Below, piece by piece: positions 50,789 to 60,624 of a DNA stretch of 64,000 bases. The notes beneath the pieces were generated by a model that searched no databases, was not told the origin of the DNA, and saw only the letters and a program-made list of their open reading frames with translations. Source of the DNA: Tubulanus polymorphus (taxonomy: Eukaryota; Animalia; Nemertea); NCBI RefSeq assembly GCF_964204645.1, contig NC_134030.1, forward strand, positions 10,375,947-10,439,946, read 5' to 3'. A program made the translations under genes and the position numbers. Numbering within the stretch: position 1 is the first letter of the stretch; each line of letters starts with the position of its first letter.

Positions 50789-51407
50789 CTAGAATATGGA
50801 AATAACATCGATGATACACTATATCTTCATTACCAGTACCCGTCACAGTGGCCACTTTCTGCTATTTACCGCCCCCTGTTTCCCTTTTTTTCATATATTT
50901 TCATCATTCATCATTTATGAAATTTGAGAAATCATGGCTCTAAGTTTCAATTGAATTTGAGAAATCTGGCATCGTTGTCTAATGGACATTGTTGGCATTT
51001 TCGCCTTGCTACAGGCAAAATCCTTTATTGCGCTTATCGACTGCGGTGTCCTCATTAACACTTTCATTGTGTTTACACCATAGCGCGGTGTATAGATCAA
51101 TGATGACCTTTGCTAGTACACCGCGTATTAATCACAGTGTATTATTACTAATACATGTAGTTATTAGTTTCTATCTCCACTAAAAGATCACAGCACTGTA
51201 AAACGCAGTGAAATATTAGTACCTGACGATACACCGCACTACGGTGTAGATGCACTATTATAGCGGTATGCCAGCTAATCAACACACTTAAAAATTTTCA
51301 AATTGTCTCCAGCAATTTTGGGTGTCAATTAGTCAGCACTGAGAGGGTTAAGTGAAAGTTCTTGTATATCAGACAGTACATAGGTCTTGTATATCCCGGT
51401 TTCTTAC

Positions 51408-51598
51408 CTATGTAGTAAAGATATCTGGCCCAGTCGTTGTTCGACACGCTTTCCGGATACGTCGATTTCGAAATCAGCTTGTCGGCTTGATCGTACAGGT
51501 TGAAGTGTAGGTAGTTTCGCAACAGCAAATTCAGGATCATCGCTTGTCCCTCGAAGTCCGACCTCAACGTGCACGTGCGAAGTCGCGAGTGTAAAAAA
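51408..51598 (-). CDS. PSMD3: PSMD3 exon 5
   Basis: Reads [19 protein letters not shown]...[18 protein letters not shown]...WARYLYY. Confidence 0.95.
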
Positions 51599-52038
51599 CT
51601 GCAACGAGAAAAGATGCGTATTTTAAAGACCTTGAGATTCAAAACCATTATTTTTGTTTATATAAAATAGATACTCATTGCGAGTTACCTAAGGAGGCCA
51701 GAAAATCTGGGACCAGTTGGTGAAAATATGTTTAAGAGTTGACCAGTGGATAGTTGATGGACAGTGAAAATTATATTTCATTGTTACTATGGTATTTATC
51801 CGCTGGCTATCTTTAACAAACATTTGAGCAACTGGTCCCGGATCATTATAACTGATAGTAGTTACTTGTATTCAGTATGAAAAGAGTTAAAAATATCTAA
51901 TATCTGATATGTTGTTGTACCCAAGTCCGTTACAACAAGGAAAAAGCTTCTTTTCACCGCTGATCCTCAACCCAATGAAGTCATATATACTGAGTATACA
52001 TTCCCAACGCTAATGAGTAATACAGAGCCAAGCTCTTC

Positions 52039-52104
52039 GCATTCAGTCCGTCCTAATGTTCAACCATAGTCTTTAACTCAACACATCAACTATCATCATA
52101 TGCA
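52039..52104 (-). ncRNA. Box C/D snoRNA family A, diverged copy
   Basis: ATGATGA...CTGA boxes retained; several substitutions relative to the other copies. Confidence 0.55.
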
Positions 52105-52479
52105 GGAGTGAGGTATCACATGAGTTGATTTATGTCTTGTATTTATGCACACAGTACTTTCAATAGAAAATAATTCTAACATATTATTTTCAGCATTGGA
52201 ATAAAATGGTTTCTAATCTTTCCATTTTCAATTGGAAAATATGACAATTAACGATTTATTGTGTCCAAAGTGTATTCAATCATTCCAATGGGGGTATCCA
52301 AGTGTTACTCATACAGATGTCGACCCCGAAAAAATCACACAATTTTCTAAGGCCAAAATCCAACTTTTACTCAAGCACGGCAGTTATTACTAAGTGTTAT
52401 TTGAAAACTTTATTACTGATAGCCCTTTATCACTGAGGTAAGATGTAGAAGGCATATATGGCCTTTACAGTCATACTTT

Positions 52480-52548
52480 TTGCATCAGTCCGTCCTAGTG
52501 TTCAATCATAAGTTTTTAACTCAACACATCAACTGTCATCATATGCAA
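52480..52548 (-). ncRNA. Box C/D snoRNA family A
   Basis: TTGCA-T-ATGATGA...TTGA...ATGATT...ACTAGGACGGA-CTGA-TGCAA: C, D', C' and D boxes plus a terminal stem. Confidence 0.75.
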
Positions 52549-52907
52549 GAGTGACGAGGTATCGCATGAGGTGATTCATAAAATTGTAAATATTGTACGC
52601 GGTACTTTCAATAGAAAATGATTCAAATATTCTTTTAAGCGATGGAATAAAACGGTTTGATAATCTTTCCTTTTTATTCATTGGAAAATATGACAATTTA
52701 CTGGAGTGTGCAAAGTAGGCCTATGTGGAGACGATTAAAAAATCTAATTTAAAATTGGATGTCTTTTTAATCACTGGAATGAATTACATAGTTTAAAGTT
52801 GTCGGTTTACGGGGTATAAAGAATGGTCTATCATGTGAACGTTATAAGTTTCTACCACCAACCACCCACCAGATAATAATCTCAGAATTTTCAGTAGTAA
52901 AATCGTT

Positions 52908-53002
52908 GCTTGCATCAGATAAGCTATGTAAGCAATTTTATTCATTGTGTTCTGGTGATACACTCCCATAAGAGGTGTCAATTTAAATCATCATTTGCAA
53001 GC
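52908..53002 (-). ncRNA. Box C/D snoRNA family B
   Basis: GCTTGCA-A-ATGATGA...CAGA...ATGAATA...CTGA-TGCAAGC, with a 7-bp terminal stem. Confidence 0.75.
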
Positions 53003-53510
53003 GGAACAACAAAATTATTCTAATAAGGGTGTCTGAGTGTCGATAGCAGGGGCAGAACCAGGGGGATTTGTGAGACTTGTACAACTCTACTTGTACTTAA
53101 ATTTTCTTAGTGCCTTTTTTCATTTTGTCAACAAAGATTATTAATAACTATGCATTTCAGTGCAGTAGTGCCACTTTTATTGCCTTTTTGGACATGAAAA
53201 TGCCTTTTTGGATATGACAAGTTCTTCTAAACTGGCCCCTCAGTGGAGGAGTAAACCTATATTGCATTTTTGGACATGAAAGCTCCATTTGGGATGCGAC
53301 AAGTCCTTCAAAATTTGCCTCAGGATCTGCCCCTGGAAAGATGCTGACCCGGAAAAAATCACCTGTTTTTTTTTCGGTCTAAAATTTGACTAACTTGCCT
53401 ATAGTGTAAAGTGGTTATTTCAAAGTGTCATTTGAAAGCTTTATCACTGATAGCACTTTATCACTGAAAGTAAGATGTAGAGGGCATATGGCCTTTACAA
53501 CCACACTTTT

Positions 53511-53577
53511 AGCATCAGTCCGTCCTAGTGTTCAATCATAGTTTTTAACTCAACACATCAAATGTCATCATATGCAA
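53511..53577 (-). ncRNA. Box C/D snoRNA family A
   Basis: Same boxes and guide as the other A copies. Confidence 0.75.
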
Positions 53578-53913
53578 GAGTGAAGTATCACATGAGGAGA
53601 TCTATTGCAAATATTGTACGCAGAAAATGATACAAATATTCTTTTTTTTAACAATGGAATAAAATTGTTTTTAATCTTTCCCTTTTCCATTGGAAAATAT
53701 GACAATTTATAATTCACTGTGTACAAAATATGTACTGGTAATCAAACAATCCCAGTTAATTGGATGCTTTTTAATCACTGGAGTGAATTACATAATAATT
53801 TAAAGTTGTAGGTTTTCAGGGTATAAAGATTGGTCTATCGTGTGAACATTGAGTAGCTACCTTAAACCACCCACCAGAAGAGAATGTCAGAATTTTTCAG
53901 TAGTTAAATCATT

Positions 53914-54008
53914 ACTTGCATCAGATAAGCTATGTAAGCAATTTTATTCATAGTGTTCTGATGATACACTCCCATAAGAGGTGTCAATTCAAATCATCAT
54001 TTGCAAGC
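53914..54008 (-). ncRNA. Box C/D snoRNA family B
   Basis: Same boxes and stem as the other B copies. Confidence 0.75.
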
Positions 54009-54412
54009 GGAACAACGTTATTCATACCGTATATTCAATCATTCTAATGGGGGTATCCGAGTGGGGACTTGGGACCAGGGGGACTTGTGAGGCTTGTACA
54101 AGTCAATCAATTTTTTCAAGTGCCCTTTTTTATTTTGCCAACGAAGAAAATAGTGCATTTCAGTGCGATAGTTCCCCTGCTATTGCCTTAATGGACATAA
54201 AGGTCACATTTGGGATGTGACAAGTCCTTTGAAATTCGCCCCTGGATAGACATCGACCCCCAAAAAATCACCAATTTTTTTCGGTCCAAAATTAGACTTT
54301 ACCTGAGCATACAGTAGTTATTTCAAAGAATCATTTGAAAACTTTATCACCGATAGCACTTTATCACTGAAAGTATGATGTAGAGGGCGCATGGCCTTTA
54401 CAGCCACAATTT

Positions 54413-54480
54413 TTGCATCAGTCCGTCCTAGTGTTCAATCATAGTTTTTAACTCAACACATCAACTGTCATCATTTGCAA
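54413..54480 (-). ncRNA. Box C/D snoRNA family A
   Basis: Same boxes and guide. Confidence 0.75.
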
Positions 54481-54769
54481 GAGTGACGAGGTATCGCATG
54501 AGGTATGCAATACTTTCAATAGAAAATGATTCAAATATGGTTTTTAATCTTTCCTTTTTCCATAGGAAAATATCACGATTTACTGAGTCCAAAGTATGCA
54601 CTGGAAATTTAATGATCCCAATCGATTGGATACCTTTAATCACTGGAATGAATTACATAGTTTAAAGTCGTAGGTTTAGAGGGTATAAAGAGTGGTCTAT
54701 CATATGAACGTCGAGTACCCCAACCACCGACCGAAAAAGAATTGCAGAATTTTCAGTAGTTAAATCATT

Positions 54770-54864
54770 TCTTGCATCAGATAAGCTATGTAAGCTATTT
54801 TATTCATTGTGTTCTGATGATACACTACCATAAGAGGTGTCAATTCAAATCATCATTTGCAAGC
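54770..54864 (-). ncRNA. Box C/D snoRNA family B
   Basis: Same boxes and stem. Confidence 0.72.
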
Positions 54865-55185
54865 GGAACAACAAGGACACCAAACATTTTTGGGTGCCCT
54901 TTTCTCTTGTCAACAAAGATAGTCAGTTCATTTCAGTGGGGGAGTATGCCTTATGTTTTTCTTGTGGACACAAAAGTGCCCTTTTGGGATGTGACAAGTC
55001 CTGCAAAATTTGTCCCGGAATTCGCCCCTGGATAGATGTCAACCCTAAAAAAAGTCACCTGATTTTTTTCGGTTCAAAATTTGACTCTTACATGAGTATA
55101 TATGGTAGTTATTTCAAAGTATCATTTGAAAACTGTATCACTGAAGTAAGATGTAGGCTGCATTTGGCCTTAACATCCACACTTT

Positions 55186-55253
55186 TTGCATCAGTCCGTC
55201 CTAGTGTTCAATCATAGTTTCTAACTCAACACATCAAATGTCATCATATGCAA
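55186..55253 (-). ncRNA. Box C/D snoRNA family A
   Basis: Same boxes and guide. Confidence 0.75.
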
Positions 55254-55573
55254 GAGTGAGGTACCATATGAGGGATTTATATATTGTTTATACTGTATGA
55301 GTATTAACTTGGTTCTTGGTGTAATGATGCACGGTATCATTACACGATATAAGAACTAGTAAAACTCCATAATCAAGAACAAAAACGAGATTTGTAGATA
55401 GTCCTTGGTATACGCAAGCAAGACTCCAATATAGAGATAGATAGTCATATCAATTTCAACAATTTGGTCGAATATAATTTTTAACTACTAACAGCCGTTA
55501 TCTTGCAAACTGTGAGCCCTTTATTACTGAGGTAAGATGTGGAAGGCATGTGTGGCCTTTACAGTCATACTTT

Positions 55574-55641
55574 TTGCATCAGTCCGTCCTAGTGTTCAAT
55601 CATAGTTTTTGACTCAACACTTCAACTGTCATCATATGCAA
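55574..55641 (-). ncRNA. Box C/D snoRNA family A
   Basis: Same boxes and guide. Confidence 0.72.
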
Positions 55642-55962
55642 GAGTGAAGTATCATATGAGGTGATTTATAATGTAAATATTTTATTCCATACTTTCAATA
55701 GAAAATGATTATTAATTCTTTTTAGCAATGGAATGAAATGATTCAAATATTCTTTTCACCGATGGAAAATTTGACAATTTACTGTGTCCAAAGTAAGTAC
55801 CAGTAATTAAACAATCCCATTCAATTAAATCACTAAAGCGAATTAAGGTACATCATTGTAGGTTTACAGCGTATAAACAGTGGTCTACCATGTAAACATT
55901 GTGTGGCCACCCCCAACCACCCACCAGGAAAGAATCTCAGAATTTTCATTAGCAAAATCATT

Positions 55963-56058
55963 GCTTGCATCAGATAAGCTATGTAAGCAATTTTATTCAT
56001 TGTGTTCTGATGATACACTCCCATAAGAGGTGTCAATTCAAATTCATCATTTGCAAGC
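55963..56058 (-). ncRNA. Box C/D snoRNA family B
   Basis: Same boxes and stem. Confidence 0.75.
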
Positions 56059-56558
56059 AGAACAACATTATTCCTGTATTCAATTATTCTAATGGGGGTA
56101 TCCAAGTGTTGATAGCAGGGGCAGAACCAGGGGGATTTGTGAGAGGAGTTAGTACAAGTACATCAATTTTTTTCAAGTGCCCTTTTTTCATTTTGTCAAC
56201 AAAGATATTTGTACACTTCAGTGTGATAGTACCCCTGTCATTGCCTTTTTGGATATCAAAGTGTCTAGGTATATGACAAGTTCACCAAAACTGGCCCTCA
56301 GTGTAGGAGTAATGTAAACCTAATATTGCCTTTTTGGACATCAAAGTTCCATTTGGGATGTGATAGGTCCTTTGAAATGTGCCCCTGGTTCAGTCCCAGG
56401 ATAGATGTTGACACCAAAAAAATCACACAATTTCTTTGGACCAAAATTTGCCTCTTACATGAGTTATTTTGAAGTATGATTTGAAAACTTTATCACTGAT
56501 AGCACTTTATCACTGAAGTAAGATGTAGAGGGCATATGGCCTTTACAACCACACTTTT

Positions 56559-56625
56559 AGCATCAGTCCGTCCTAGTGTTCAATCATAGTTTTTGACTCA
56601 ACACATCAAATGTCATCATATGCAA
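56559..56625 (-). ncRNA. Box C/D snoRNA family A
   Basis: Same boxes and guide. Confidence 0.75.
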
Positions 56626-56698
56626 GAGTGAGGTATCACATGAGGGATTTATCATTTATATATTGTTTACACTGTATGAGTATTTACTTGGTTCTTGG

Positions 56699-57478
56699 TG
56701 TAATGATGCACGGTGTCTACACCATTCAAGAACTAGTAAAACTGCGTAATCAAGAACAAAAACGAGATAGTCCTTGGTATACGAAAGCAAGAAGTTTATT
56801 GTACCAAATTATGTATCGTTCGTCACACTCGTGAAAATTCCAATATAGCCTATAGATAGATAGTCATATCAATTTCAACAACTTGCGTCGAATATAATTT
56901 TCAACTAACAGTCGATATCGTGCAAACTGTGAGCTAAGGTCTCACCTAAACCGAGCCAAAATCTCCCCTCCCAGTCAGTGCCTGGGGTTTTATATCCCTC
57001 AGCACTCGACTGGTCACCTGACTATAATTCCAAATCTGATTGGCTAACTTTTAGAATGATATCATAGTTTTGCCAGATGCCTAACAACCTCCGAAATTGA
57101 GGTCCTGCCATTTCTGATGTAAACAGATCTAAATACTATTATTATCTAAATAATGATTTTCTTTGTTTTCTTTTAATTTACCTACTCGACTACCTGTTGC
57201 AGTATAGTGATATTATGGTTTGGTCGAAACAATGGCCACGAACTGAATGTCCTCTTCTATAAATCAATTTCTCTAAAATGGAATTCATTGTTAATGTTTA
57301 CGCCTGACCAAACCGCAAGCTAAATTCTAAGGATTTAAAGTTAGGGGAACATCTCATTCTGCCGTCAATTGTTTACTAATGCCAAATTAATAACTCGTCA
57401 TGTAGCCTTAGATATCCATTGTTTTAATATCTTCAAACATCTTCAATTTTATCGAATGTCAGATTTTTTATCATGACA
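56699..57478 (-). mobile_element. Solo LTR (780 bp); truncated duplicate at ~55320-55517
   Basis: TGTAATGAT...ATCATGACA ends and a 5-bp TSD CTTGG on both sides. On the - strand, TATAAAA (~56988-94) lies upstream of AATAAA (56795-800). Confidence 0.8.
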
Positions 57479-57753
57479 CTTGGGAACGATTATAAAATAT
57501 TATTTTTAGCAATAGAATAAAGTGGGTTTTAATCTCTTCCGTTTCCATCGGAAAATATGTCAATTTACTGTGTAAATAAGTAAGTACCGCTGATTAAATT
57601 ATCGCATTTAATTGGATGCCTTTAATCACTGGAGTGAATTACAAAGTGGTAGGTTTACAGGGTAAAAAGAATGGCCTATCTTATGAACGTTAAGTAGCGA
57701 CCCTCTATCACCGACCAGAAGGGAATCTAAGAGTTTTCAGTACTCAAATCATT

Positions 57754-57848
57754 GCTTGCATCAGATAAGCTATGTAAGCAATTTTATTCATTGCGTTATG
57801 ATTATACACTCCCATAAGAGGTGTCAATTCAAATCATCATTTGCAAGC
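57754..57848 (-). ncRNA. Box C/D snoRNA family B (D' box mutated)
   Basis: C/D boxes and stem intact; internal CAGA changed to CATA. Confidence 0.65.
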
Positions 57849-58102
57849 GGAACAACATTATTCCGGCTGTATTCAATCATTCTAATAAGGGGATCATAAT
57901 GTTGATAGCAGGGGCAGAACCAGGGGTACCAGTGAGACTTGTGAGACTTATACAAGTCCACCAAATAATTTCGAGCGCTCTGTTTTATTTTGTCAACAAA
58001 AATAAATGGTTAATTTTAGTGCGAGAGTATACCTTGTATTGCCTTTCAGGGCATGAAAGCGCCTTTTTCGGATGTGGCATATGGCCTTTACAGCCACAAT
58101 TT

Positions 58103-58170
58103 TTGCATCAGTCCGTCCTAGTGTTCAATCATAGTTTTTTACTCAACACATCAACTGTCATCATATGCAA
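58103..58170 (-). ncRNA. Box C/D snoRNA family A
   Basis: Same boxes and guide. Confidence 0.75.
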
Positions 58171-58488
58171 GAGTGAGGTGAGGTAAGATACAATATTCAG
58201 TACTAGAAAATGATTATAAGTATCTACAAATTACTGTGGCCAAAGTAAGTACTACTAGTTTAAACAAGCATTCAATCCCATTTAATTGGATGCCTTTAAA
58301 CAATTATACAATCCCATTTAATTGGATCCCATTTAATCACTGGAGTGAATTGCATATAGGCCTAGTTTAAAGTTGTAGGTTTAGAGGATATAAAGAGTGG
58401 TTTATCATGTGGACGTTAAAAGTTGCTACCCCCAACCACCAACCATATAAGATAGGGCCTACACAGAATTTTCAAAACTAAAATCATT

Positions 58489-58582
58489 GCTTGCATCAGA
58501 TAAGCTATGTAAGCAATTTTATTCATTGGTTCTGATGATACACTCCCATAAGAGGTGTGAATTCAAATCATCATTTGCAAGC
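58489..58582 (-). ncRNA. Box C/D snoRNA family B
   Basis: Same boxes and stem. Confidence 0.72.
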
Positions 58583-58981
58583 AGAACAACCTACTGCATG
58601 TATTCTATCATTCTAATGGGGGCATCCGAGTTTTGATAGCAGGGGCAGAGCCAGAGCCAGGGGGAGTTATTAGACTCACACAACTCCATAAACTTTTTTT
58701 AGTGCCCCTTTTCATTTTGTCAACAAAGATAATGATGCATCTTAGCGTGATAGTTCCCCTGTTATTGCCCTTGTGGACATGAAAGTGCCCTTTTGGGATG
58801 TGACAACCCCGGCATCCACCCCATGGATAGATGTCGACCCCAAAAAATCACCCAATCTTTTTCCGGTCCCAATATGACACTACACGAGTCTCAAAGTATC
58901 ATTTGAAAATTTTATCACTGATAGCCCTTTATCACTGAAGTAAGATGTAGAAGGCATATATGGCCTTTACAACCACACTTT

Positions 58982-59049
58982 TTGCATCAGTCCGTCCTAG
59001 TGTTCAATCATAGTTTTTAACTCAACACATCAAATGTCATCATATGCAA
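58982..59049 (-). ncRNA. Box C/D snoRNA family A
   Basis: Same boxes and guide. Confidence 0.75.
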
Positions 59050-59235
59050 GAGTGAGGTATCACATCAGAAAAATGATTCAAATATTATTTTCACCCATGG
59101 AATAAAATGGTTTTTAATCTTTCTTTTTTCCATTGGCAAATATGACAATTCATTGTCCAAAGTAAGTACCGGTAATTAAACAATCCCAAGCATCTACCAG
59201 AAAAGAATCTCAGAATTTTTAGTAGTAAAATCATT

Positions 59236-59329
59236 GCTTGCATCAGATAAGCATGTAAGCAATTTTATTCATTGTGTCCCGATGATACACTCCCATAAGA
59301 GGTGTCAATTCAAATCATCATTTACAAGC
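59236..59329 (-). ncRNA. Box C/D snoRNA family B (variant)
   Basis: C/D boxes intact; 1-nt deletion in the D guide; D' altered. Confidence 0.62.
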
Positions 59330-59849
59330 GACCTGTTGATAGTTTACTCAAAAAACCTTTTTCCACTTCAAATGAAGACTGATGACTCTTTAAGATGGCA
59401 GTCCATTGTGCGTCAGTTGACTATCTGATAGAGCAATCCGTCTGATATGTTATGGGAGATCGAAATAATTGAGAGGCATCTTCAAAATTTTCCTTTAAAA
59501 CTTCAAAAATGTGTAAAATGTACTGATCTTGGCGATGATCAACGGCTGCCGGTTGGACATCCTGATTCTGATCACGGGGCCAGTTTTCGGGCTGAAGATG
59601 TGTCTAGGGTAGTTGAATGTACATACCAAAATATCACGAAAATCCCTCCCTCAAAGCATCTTCAAACACTTCCGAAAATAAATGGATTCCATCTACACAC
59701 GAACAGCCGATGACGGACAGAAACTGAACACAATATAACACGCTGGTACTTAAGACCCGAGTGGGCTAAAAAGGCATCTAAAACGTCAATATTCTACACG
59801 TTTGTTCTTTACATCGTAATGAGCTATCGCAGCTAGATTGACGACTCAC

Positions 59850-59986
59850 CTCCGTATCTTGTCGAGTTGGTTCGTCAATTCGTGCGCTCGGAAGTAATAG
59901 AAATACGCCTTCGCCGCGATCATGTCCAGCGACCGACGATTCTGAGCGAGGACTTTCTCCATCAACAGATTCGCGCACGTTACAGC
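59850..59986 (-). CDS. PSMD3: PSMD3 exon 4
   Basis: Reads AVTCANLLMEKVLAQNRRSLDMIAAKAYFYY...DKIR; phases 0/2. Confidence 0.92.
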
Positions 59987-60624
59987 CTTCAAAAACAGAA
60001 ACAAAGCTTCTTCTTTTACACCCGATGCAGTAGCTTCACAAGGAAATATTTCCGTACAGGGTGGCTATATTTGACCTGCTTTGACCCAGACTATTCCCGG
60101 ACACGCACGGCTAACTTCGGTTATCAGAGTTAGTCGACTAGTCGTACATGTACTTAATGAAACCGAATGTCAGTTAGTCGGAACTATAGTCCTGAAATAG
60201 TCGACCACGCGGTTGAGCACGGTTGCAGTAGTTTGGACCTATTTCCAAAATGGCCGACGATGTGAAATATCTTACGACCAAATTATAGCGCGTTCGGTTA
60301 TTAGTTCCGACAACAAGTCCACTAGCGAATAGAACTGAAGTTCGCCCTTGTTGTTCTTTGACTTTCCCTCTGACTGATTTGCTAAGAATTCAACCAATCA
60401 ACTCAATCCAATACGAAAAAGACATGGACGGAAACTGTTTGATTTTACGCATTATCTTGTAGCAACCTCATCTGATTTTTTGGTTATTTTACAAAATTCA
60501 CCGACTTGAAAAAAATATCTACATTTTCTGTTAGTGAAGGAGTTTTCAAGGAATCAAGTGGTAGGAAGCCGGTTATAACCAACACCGAAGGAAGAACGCA
60601 GTATGGTAAAACTCGAATACTTAC

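Follow-up and report, generated by a model that had tools for sequence, protein, structure and literature searches.

The question that this locus raises is what a series of short repeated blocks represents when all of them lie in a single intron of a proteasome gene. The window analysed here, a stretch of 64,000 nucleotides (nt) from contig NC_134030.1 of the nemertean Tubulanus polymorphus, contains the gene PSMD3/Rpn3 on its minus strand. On the same strand, between positions 52037 and 59329, we identified 16 compact box C/D blocks of two families, nine copies of family A (68-69 nt) and seven copies of family B (94-96 nt). We consider it highly probable that they form a locally amplified cluster of genes for two canonical methylation-guide small nucleolar RNAs (snoRNAs) of the box C/D class, placed in sense orientation in PSMD3 intron 4. 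An earlier sequence-only reading of the same DNA had proposed such an array, and its 16 units, their strand and their alternating order of transcription (B A B A B A B A A B A B A B A A) were all recovered as claimed.

The host gene and the extent of the intron given in that reading also held. The exon upstream of the array (59850-60004, minus strand) matches the Pfam profile TPR_PSMD3_N at positions 125-170 (E 1.9e-16), and the exon downstream of it (51406-51598, minus strand) continues with positions 171-236 of the same profile (E 1.2e-32) and is backed by its translation and by homologues of the exon in other animals. Intron 4 occupies 51599-59849 between them (minus strand, 8,251 nt), with GT at 59849-59848 and AG at 51600-51599, exactly at the borders, and the contiguous profile positions and the reading frame agree with these limits. 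Other PSMD3 exons match PCI and Rpn3_C, and there are matches at E 1e-39 to PSMD3 chains of solved structure; the exons were searched one at a time and no joined coding sequence was used. All 16 units are thus sense-oriented between two exons carrying adjacent profile positions, which is the arrangement of an intronic snoRNA cluster.

Listed in the order of transcription, all on the minus strand, the copies are B1 (SNORD60-like, 59236-59329), A1 (snoR20a-like, 58982-59049), B2 (58489-58582), A2 (58103-58170), B3 (57754-57848), A3 (56558-56625), B4 (55963-56058), A4 (55574-55641), A5 (55186-55253), B5 (54770-54864), A6 (54413-54480), B6 (53914-54008), A7 (53510-53577), B7 (52908-53002), A8 (52480-52548) and A9 (52037-52105). 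A5 follows A4 directly, with no B between them, and its upstream flank is common to A3. A 25-nt core of family A occurred nine times and a 29-nt core of family B six times, plus a seventh time with a 1-nt deletion; the expectation from window shuffles was 0.00 for both. Tandem Repeats Finder did not detect the array in the window because the longest period of the tool is 500. The array is not an assembly artefact, as contigs from public runs (two samples of one study) match it over stretches of 150-440 nt with 0-1 differences, some of them exactly. We also noticed an alternation at position 16 of the A copies, the third base of the D′ guide region, which reads U, G, U, G, U, G, U, G, G from one end of the array to the other. 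It hints at a higher-order repeat made by dimer or tetramer duplication, a reading that we do not claim because the tree of the flanks does not resolve it, being a star except for the A3-A5 pair.

In box C/D snoRNAs, box C (RUGAUGA) sits close to the 5′ end and box D (CUGA) close to the 3′ end, with a terminal stem joining both, and an antisense element of at least 10 nt adjoins box D or D′ so that the target nucleotide lies opposite its fifth position. The class also has internal C′ and D′ boxes, and its members are stable RNAs of set length that bind fibrillarin, NOP56, NOP58 and SNU13. Box C (AUGAUGA) and box D (CUGA) were invariant in all 16 copies, and minimum-free-energy folds closed them by terminal stems of 5 base pairs (bp) in A and 7 bp in B. 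Together with the box-adjacent complementarity to known guided sites of ribosomal RNA (rRNA) described below, this bears out the identification of the units as box C/D snoRNA genes. In a permissive search, B aligned over the whole Rfam model of SNORD60 (RF00271), scoring 30.2 bits (E 0.0094 on 8.5 kb), with UGACACCUC-UAUG as the block in common. The plant snoR20a model (RF01193) aligned with A at 29.1 bits (E 0.0028 for a stretch of 96 bases) and snoU43 matched it as well; the sequence ACUAGGACGG directly before box D of A is the D guide of both snoR20a and snoU43 in Rfam.

The internal boxes are degenerate, namely UUGA and AUGAUUGA in A, and AUGG/GGGA and AUGAAUA in B, where they flank a covarying hairpin. 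In an alignment of 19 B sequences from the window, an intron of RPL38 (see below) and metagenomes, 93.6 % of the cells pair and seven pairs change on both sides, and within the terminal stem four of the seven pairs have changed on both sides. The covariation score was 0.44, compared with at most 0.13 for slid controls. This covariation supports the predicted terminal stem of B and an internal hairpin between D′ and C′, the latter being absent from the model used. The D′ box of B had earlier been read as CAGA, which did not stand: CAGA is loop sequence, because the covarying hairpin encloses it, and it is not kept in the homologues. The guide of B complementary to rRNA ends upstream of CAGA, before AUGG/GGGA.

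We sought the targets of both families on the genome's own ribosomal DNA (rDNA), over the whole unit of ~14 kb. The D guide of A forms 10 Watson-Crick pairs, starting from position 2 before box D, with CCGUCCUAGU of the small subunit (SSU) rRNA and puts U1098 (own numbering; ACCGU*CCUAG) opposite the fifth position. This guide, ACUAGGACGG, aimed at the SSU U of ACCGUCCUAG, is identical in eight of the nine A copies, and the change in A9 is wobble-compatible. We take U1098 to be Arabidopsis U1013 by our own count, 35 nt downstream of the A978 site (A978 as in the table of PMC8053127). Um1013 of Arabidopsis 18S rRNA has been assigned to snoR20.1 (PMC8053127). Family A is therefore predicted, on the basis of this pairing, to direct 2′-O-methylation of SSU U1098. 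The D′ guide region of A was considered as a second guide and rejected; its best match has 9 pairs including two wobbles on 5.8S rRNA, and the region is polymorphic (U/G) between copies.

In family B the guide precedes box D′. The sequence UUGACACCUCUU forms 11-12 pairs with AAGAGGUGUCAG of the large subunit (LSU) rRNA and places G3451 opposite the fifth position (site AAGAGGUGUCA, AAGAGGUG), or G3449 if the D′ box is GGGA and not AUGG. The guide is complementary to the LSU site of human 28S G4340 and the same block is aligned in the SNORD60 model; SNORD60 itself is assigned to human 28S G4340 (PMC10520360). Family B is accordingly a predicted guide, which should direct methylation of LSU G3451 or G3449. 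We also observed that seven bases of B's D-guide stretch, UUGCUUA, are complementary to LSU UAAGCAA, which adjoins the D′ target on its 5′ side; extra pairing there is a mere possibility.

Elsewhere in the 268-Mb assembly, searches with BLAST and with two covariance models built from the copies recovered A and B only as one A′-B′ unit on contig C4 (C4:12714377-12714752, plus strand; L024:4678-5053 in the C4 locus examined). Weaker covariance-model matches on contigs C11 and C2 were judged on reading to be due to chance. An RPL38 exon (L024 4119-4241; Pfam Ribosomal_L38e, E 5e-22) precedes the unit on the same strand, its 5′ splice site being 440 nt upstream, and the last RPL38 exon was not found within the C4 locus examined. 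The B′ copy keeps its boxes and the D′ guide. In A′, box C is changed to UGGAUGA and the rRNA guide is lost, and therefore the array is the only source of the SSU guide in the genome. The RPL38 unit may be the ancestral home of the A-B pair. Upstream of the RPL38 exon (L024:2125-3604) there are reverse-transcriptase-like open reading frames of 145 and 350 amino acids, by eye a fragment of a non-LTR (long terminal repeat) retrotransposon.

The distribution of the blocks speaks to another explanation, namely that the array is a transposon-derived or satellite-like repeat whose box-like motifs are coincidental. A fragment of a dispersed ~150-nt repeat, which recurs at 74-85 % identity in at least 40 copies on other contigs, does occupy the A-to-B spacer (58660-58810, minus strand), where depth spikes, and neither family reaches an Rfam gathering score, both of which would suit such an origin. 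However, the A and B blocks are confined to the array and the RPL38 intron, the B-to-A spacer is unique to the array in the genome, the boxes, the stems and the guides beside the boxes agree with two methylation sites already known, and B covaries across organisms. We regard a transposon or satellite origin of the blocks as extremely improbable, as these results contradict it. Most units contain the ~150-nt fragment, but the A8 unit and the RPL38 unit lack it; a short spacer free of the fragment is shared by the RPL38 unit and the 3′-most array unit. It is an old insertion into the unit, made before the amplification, and not the unit itself.

Several other repeats were noticed in the host intron. 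An insertion of ~800 nt between B3 and A3 (56640-57500, minus strand) carries CCAAT-like and TATAAAA motifs, and further copies of it, 83 % identical, lie on contig C2. The final ~280 nt of the insertion recur upstream of A5, and A3 and A5 group together because this part is common to both upstream flanks. Between A9 and the 3′ splice site (51709-51839) there is an 11-nt inverted repeat, GGGACCAGTTG ... CAACTGGTCCC, ~110 nt apart, which resembles a small foldback element. A very abundant dispersed repeat lies at 59500-59700; its summed word depth in run X1 is ~67,000, whereas most of the sequence around it has ~30-90.

Regarding conservation, the mean pairwise identity was 0.949 among A bodies and 0.959 among B bodies, compared with 0.49-0.75 in the 100-200 nt on either side, and the bodies diverge 4-8 times less than the flanks. 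Measured against the majority consensus, single bodies differ by 0-4 % (9 % in A9) and flanks by 8-45 %; the body is better kept than its own flanks in 15 of the 16 copies (p<0.05). The changes within bodies are mostly located in the D′-C′ loop or are wobble-compatible changes of the stem. Aligning the units, as the earlier reading had suggested, hence confirmed its near-invariant blocks between diverged spacers. Its claim that the array is under selection is supported too, as the drop in divergence is confined to the bodies and holds copy by copy in all but one.

It could be argued that only one or a few copies work and that the rest are pseudogenes kept alike by gene conversion or recent duplication. 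Some of the copies do show damage: B1 lacks one nucleotide of the D-guide region (its stem also shows a C-to-U change that still pairs, as a wobble), B2 has a G-to-C mismatch at position 10 of the D′ guide, A3 one mismatch on the 3′ side of the stem, and A7 also a stem mismatch. The most decayed copy, A9, differs from the consensus at six of 68 positions, including a mutated C′ box, has an extra A after box D, and scores 88 bits with the covariance model compared with ~100 for the other A copies. Moreover, conversion is common in tandem repeats of snoRNAs (PMC11028025). On the other hand, the divergence drops sharply and only within the bodies, with flanks that differ by 13-40 %, and it does so in 15 copies taken singly. 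The changes avoid boxes and rRNA guides, and relaxed constraint looks different, as can be seen in A′ of the RPL38 unit with its lost guide. We therefore find it rather improbable that most copies are pseudogenes; most of them appear to have been under purifying selection since the amplification. As a separate observation, the block TGTAAAGGCC, 8-20 nt downstream of A, is kept in eight array units and also in the RPL38 unit (L024 4744-4760) despite the decayed A′. A role as processing signal or splice donor is conceivable.

Searches at the exon level recovered homologues of PSMD3 exon 5, which follows the array, from other animals, the best of them with 84 % identity (a Logan contig). In this animal the intron at the same position and phase measures ~540 nt and contained no A, B or Rfam snoRNA. 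Similarly, no A, B or Rfam snoRNA was present in the 1.4 kb upstream of the exon 5 homologue of an animal with 81 % identity. The amplification seems to be lineage-specific, as far as two animals at an unfixed distance can tell. An independent, local amplification had already been proposed in the sequence-only reading, and it agrees with the confinement of A and B to the array and one RPL38 unit and with the empty orthologous intron of ~540 nt in another animal.

A metagenome scan with an 18-nt core of B returned 13 loci, in seven of which model R2 scored B-like RNAs; three of these seven contain two or three copies per contig of 1.7-3.3 kb. No A-like RNA was detected in these contigs, nor in a metagenome scan with the A core. 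The tandem B-like snoRNAs occur in the marine metagenome contigs L056 (1-1150), L046 and L053. In L056, B repeats jointly with another C/D-like unit (~430-520 and 900-1010), and between the first two B-like copies (278-385) we noticed an exon resembling an acidic ribosomal P protein. The latter reading was not retained, as the Pfam match is weak (E 0.52).

For the origin of the array we propose that an ancestral A-spacer-B unit, also present singly in the RPL38 intron, took up the transposon fragment, and that the unit with this fragment would have multiplied by unequal crossing-over. Intronic box C/D snoRNAs of animals normally occur one per intron and are freed by splicing followed by exonuclease trimming. 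Most likely, the array would be transcribed with the PSMD3 pre-mRNA and small nucleolar ribonucleoproteins would assemble on each unit. Individual RNAs might then be released by cuts between the units and trimming, or by splicing of cryptic exons, and A and B would direct the methylation of the SSU and LSU sites. The array probably serves dosage, since most copies appear to have stayed under purifying selection.

As to the mode of release, it may be that every repeat contains a short non-coding exon, that alternative splicing cuts the 8-kb PSMD3 intron into small introns, and that the transcripts containing these exons are lost to nonsense-mediated decay. This layout is that of non-coding snoRNA host genes and of SNORD116. 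A conserved, acceptor-like and pyrimidine-rich motif, CTTACTTCAG|TGATAAAG, is located ~45 nt after A in seven of the nine units, with a weaker AG version in the RPL38 unit; a donor-like GTAAG, GTAAA or GCAAG occurs ~65 nt further on in ~5-6 units; and the candidate segment opens with stop codons. A short distance from an intronic C/D snoRNA to the 3′ splice site is known to affect processing (PMC2780460). However, no conserved 5′ splice site exists for a candidate exon after B, so that one intron would still hold both B and A, the segment is missing as a whole from unit A2, and the motif is conserved barely above the spacer average. The joints seen in the public-run contigs were rejected as splicing, as they are repeat-induced chimeras without intron-type ends. 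Mini-exons thus appear possible but unlikely. The same low credence applies to a wider version, in which the PSMD3 intron is a nested snoRNA host, either split by mini-exons or with pairs of snoRNAs capping stable long RNAs, and its output is coupled to PSMD3 mRNA via alternative splicing and nonsense-mediated decay.

Our preferred explanation, the amplified cluster of guide snoRNA genes, has to be weighed against several observations that do not favour it. The C′ and D′ boxes of both families are degenerate. The search of the minus strand with Rfam, suggested in the earlier reading, was successful in part: the permissive alignments to SNORD60 and snoR20a were obtained, but at gathering thresholds there was no match in the window, with both families remaining below the 42 bits set for these two models (30.2 and 29.1 bits). 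Guides that were shuffled and placed on the whole rDNA unit reached the observed score in 8 of 100 cases for A and in 3 of 100 for B, so that the pairings are only moderately rare, and the weight therefore rests on their agreement with the sites to which those Rfam families had been assigned before. Gene conversion may also contribute to the likeness of the copies.

A further difficulty is the D-guide region of B. The 17-nt stretch before box D is the best-kept part among the copies (identity 0.99). No target for it was found on the 14-kb rDNA unit, where its score was below the shuffle mean; in the genome it gave four matches with one mismatch, about the control level, and in the window, including the host gene, only the snoRNAs' own antisense. 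This region is thus well kept but lacks a target in these searches, neither the RPL38 copy nor the metagenome homologues have the same sequence there, and part of the conservation stays unexplained.

The last group of such observations concerns expression. Contigs of three public runs, which are not recorded as RNA, showed no RNA ends or splice-type joints over 53900-59899, and the public-run contigs cover exon, spacers and snoRNAs alike. In addition, animal introns with more than one snoRNA can yield long RNAs with snoRNA ends and not free snoRNAs (PMC11028025).

With 16 individually constrained copies in an essential housekeeping gene, the locus offers a natural test case for the freeing of many snoRNAs from one intron, with the single unit in RPL38 available for comparison. 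It predicts two checkable rRNA methylations, of which the SSU U site is documented in this comparison only for Arabidopsis. The understanding of snoRNA function itself is unchanged by the locus.

Compared with known systems, the array resembles in the first place the clusters of snoRNA genes within introns of rice and Drosophila melanogaster (Liang et al. 2002, Huang et al. 2005, both cited in PMC2780460). They are reported to share with the array several sense snoRNA genes per intron of a coding host, tandem duplicates and canonical rRNA guides. The PSMD3 array differs in that 16 box C/D genes, in two alternating families, occupy one 8.3-kb intron of a proteasome gene. According to PMC3089462, the intronic clusters of Drosophila are H/ACA clusters.

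Regarding the individual RNAs, B shares with SNORD60 the UGACACCUC-UAUG guide block and the overall layout, but it lacks seven nucleotides between box C and the guide and has a different D-guide region. SNORD60 is treated as a product of a long non-coding RNA gene of the SNHG family (PMC10520360), and B is hosted by PSMD3. Family A has ACUAGGACGG directly before box D, like plant snoR20a/snoR20.1, and the same SSU nucleotide is predicted; it is, however, 22 nt shorter than snoR20a, and the likeness may reflect common descent or convergence on the site. The plant snoR20 is found in polycistronic snoRNA gene clusters together with snoR19 and snoR38Y (PMC2875012).

Large tandem repeats of C/D snoRNAs are known from imprinted mammalian loci, and more of them are expected in little-studied genomes (PMC11028025). 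SNORD115/116, SNORD113/114 and the rat Bsr repeats have in common with the array a ~1-kb repeat unit with a C/D snoRNA, local unequal recombination, and an RNA that is kept while the spacer drifts. In contrast, the mammalian arrays lie in imprinted genes for long non-coding RNAs, where each intron between the non-coding exons carries a single snoRNA, and the guides are orphans (PMC11028025), whereas the PSMD3 array has a housekeeping coding host and two alternating families, both with predicted rRNA targets. Unlike the orphan guides of SNORD115/116, both A and B carry box-adjacent complementarity to known rRNA sites. The locus thus shows that large snoRNA tandem repeats also exist beyond imprinted mammalian loci and beyond orphan guides. 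Intronic snoRNA clusters and large tandem snoRNA arrays are both kinds already known, and this locus joins the two, with canonical rRNA guides in an ordinary coding host.

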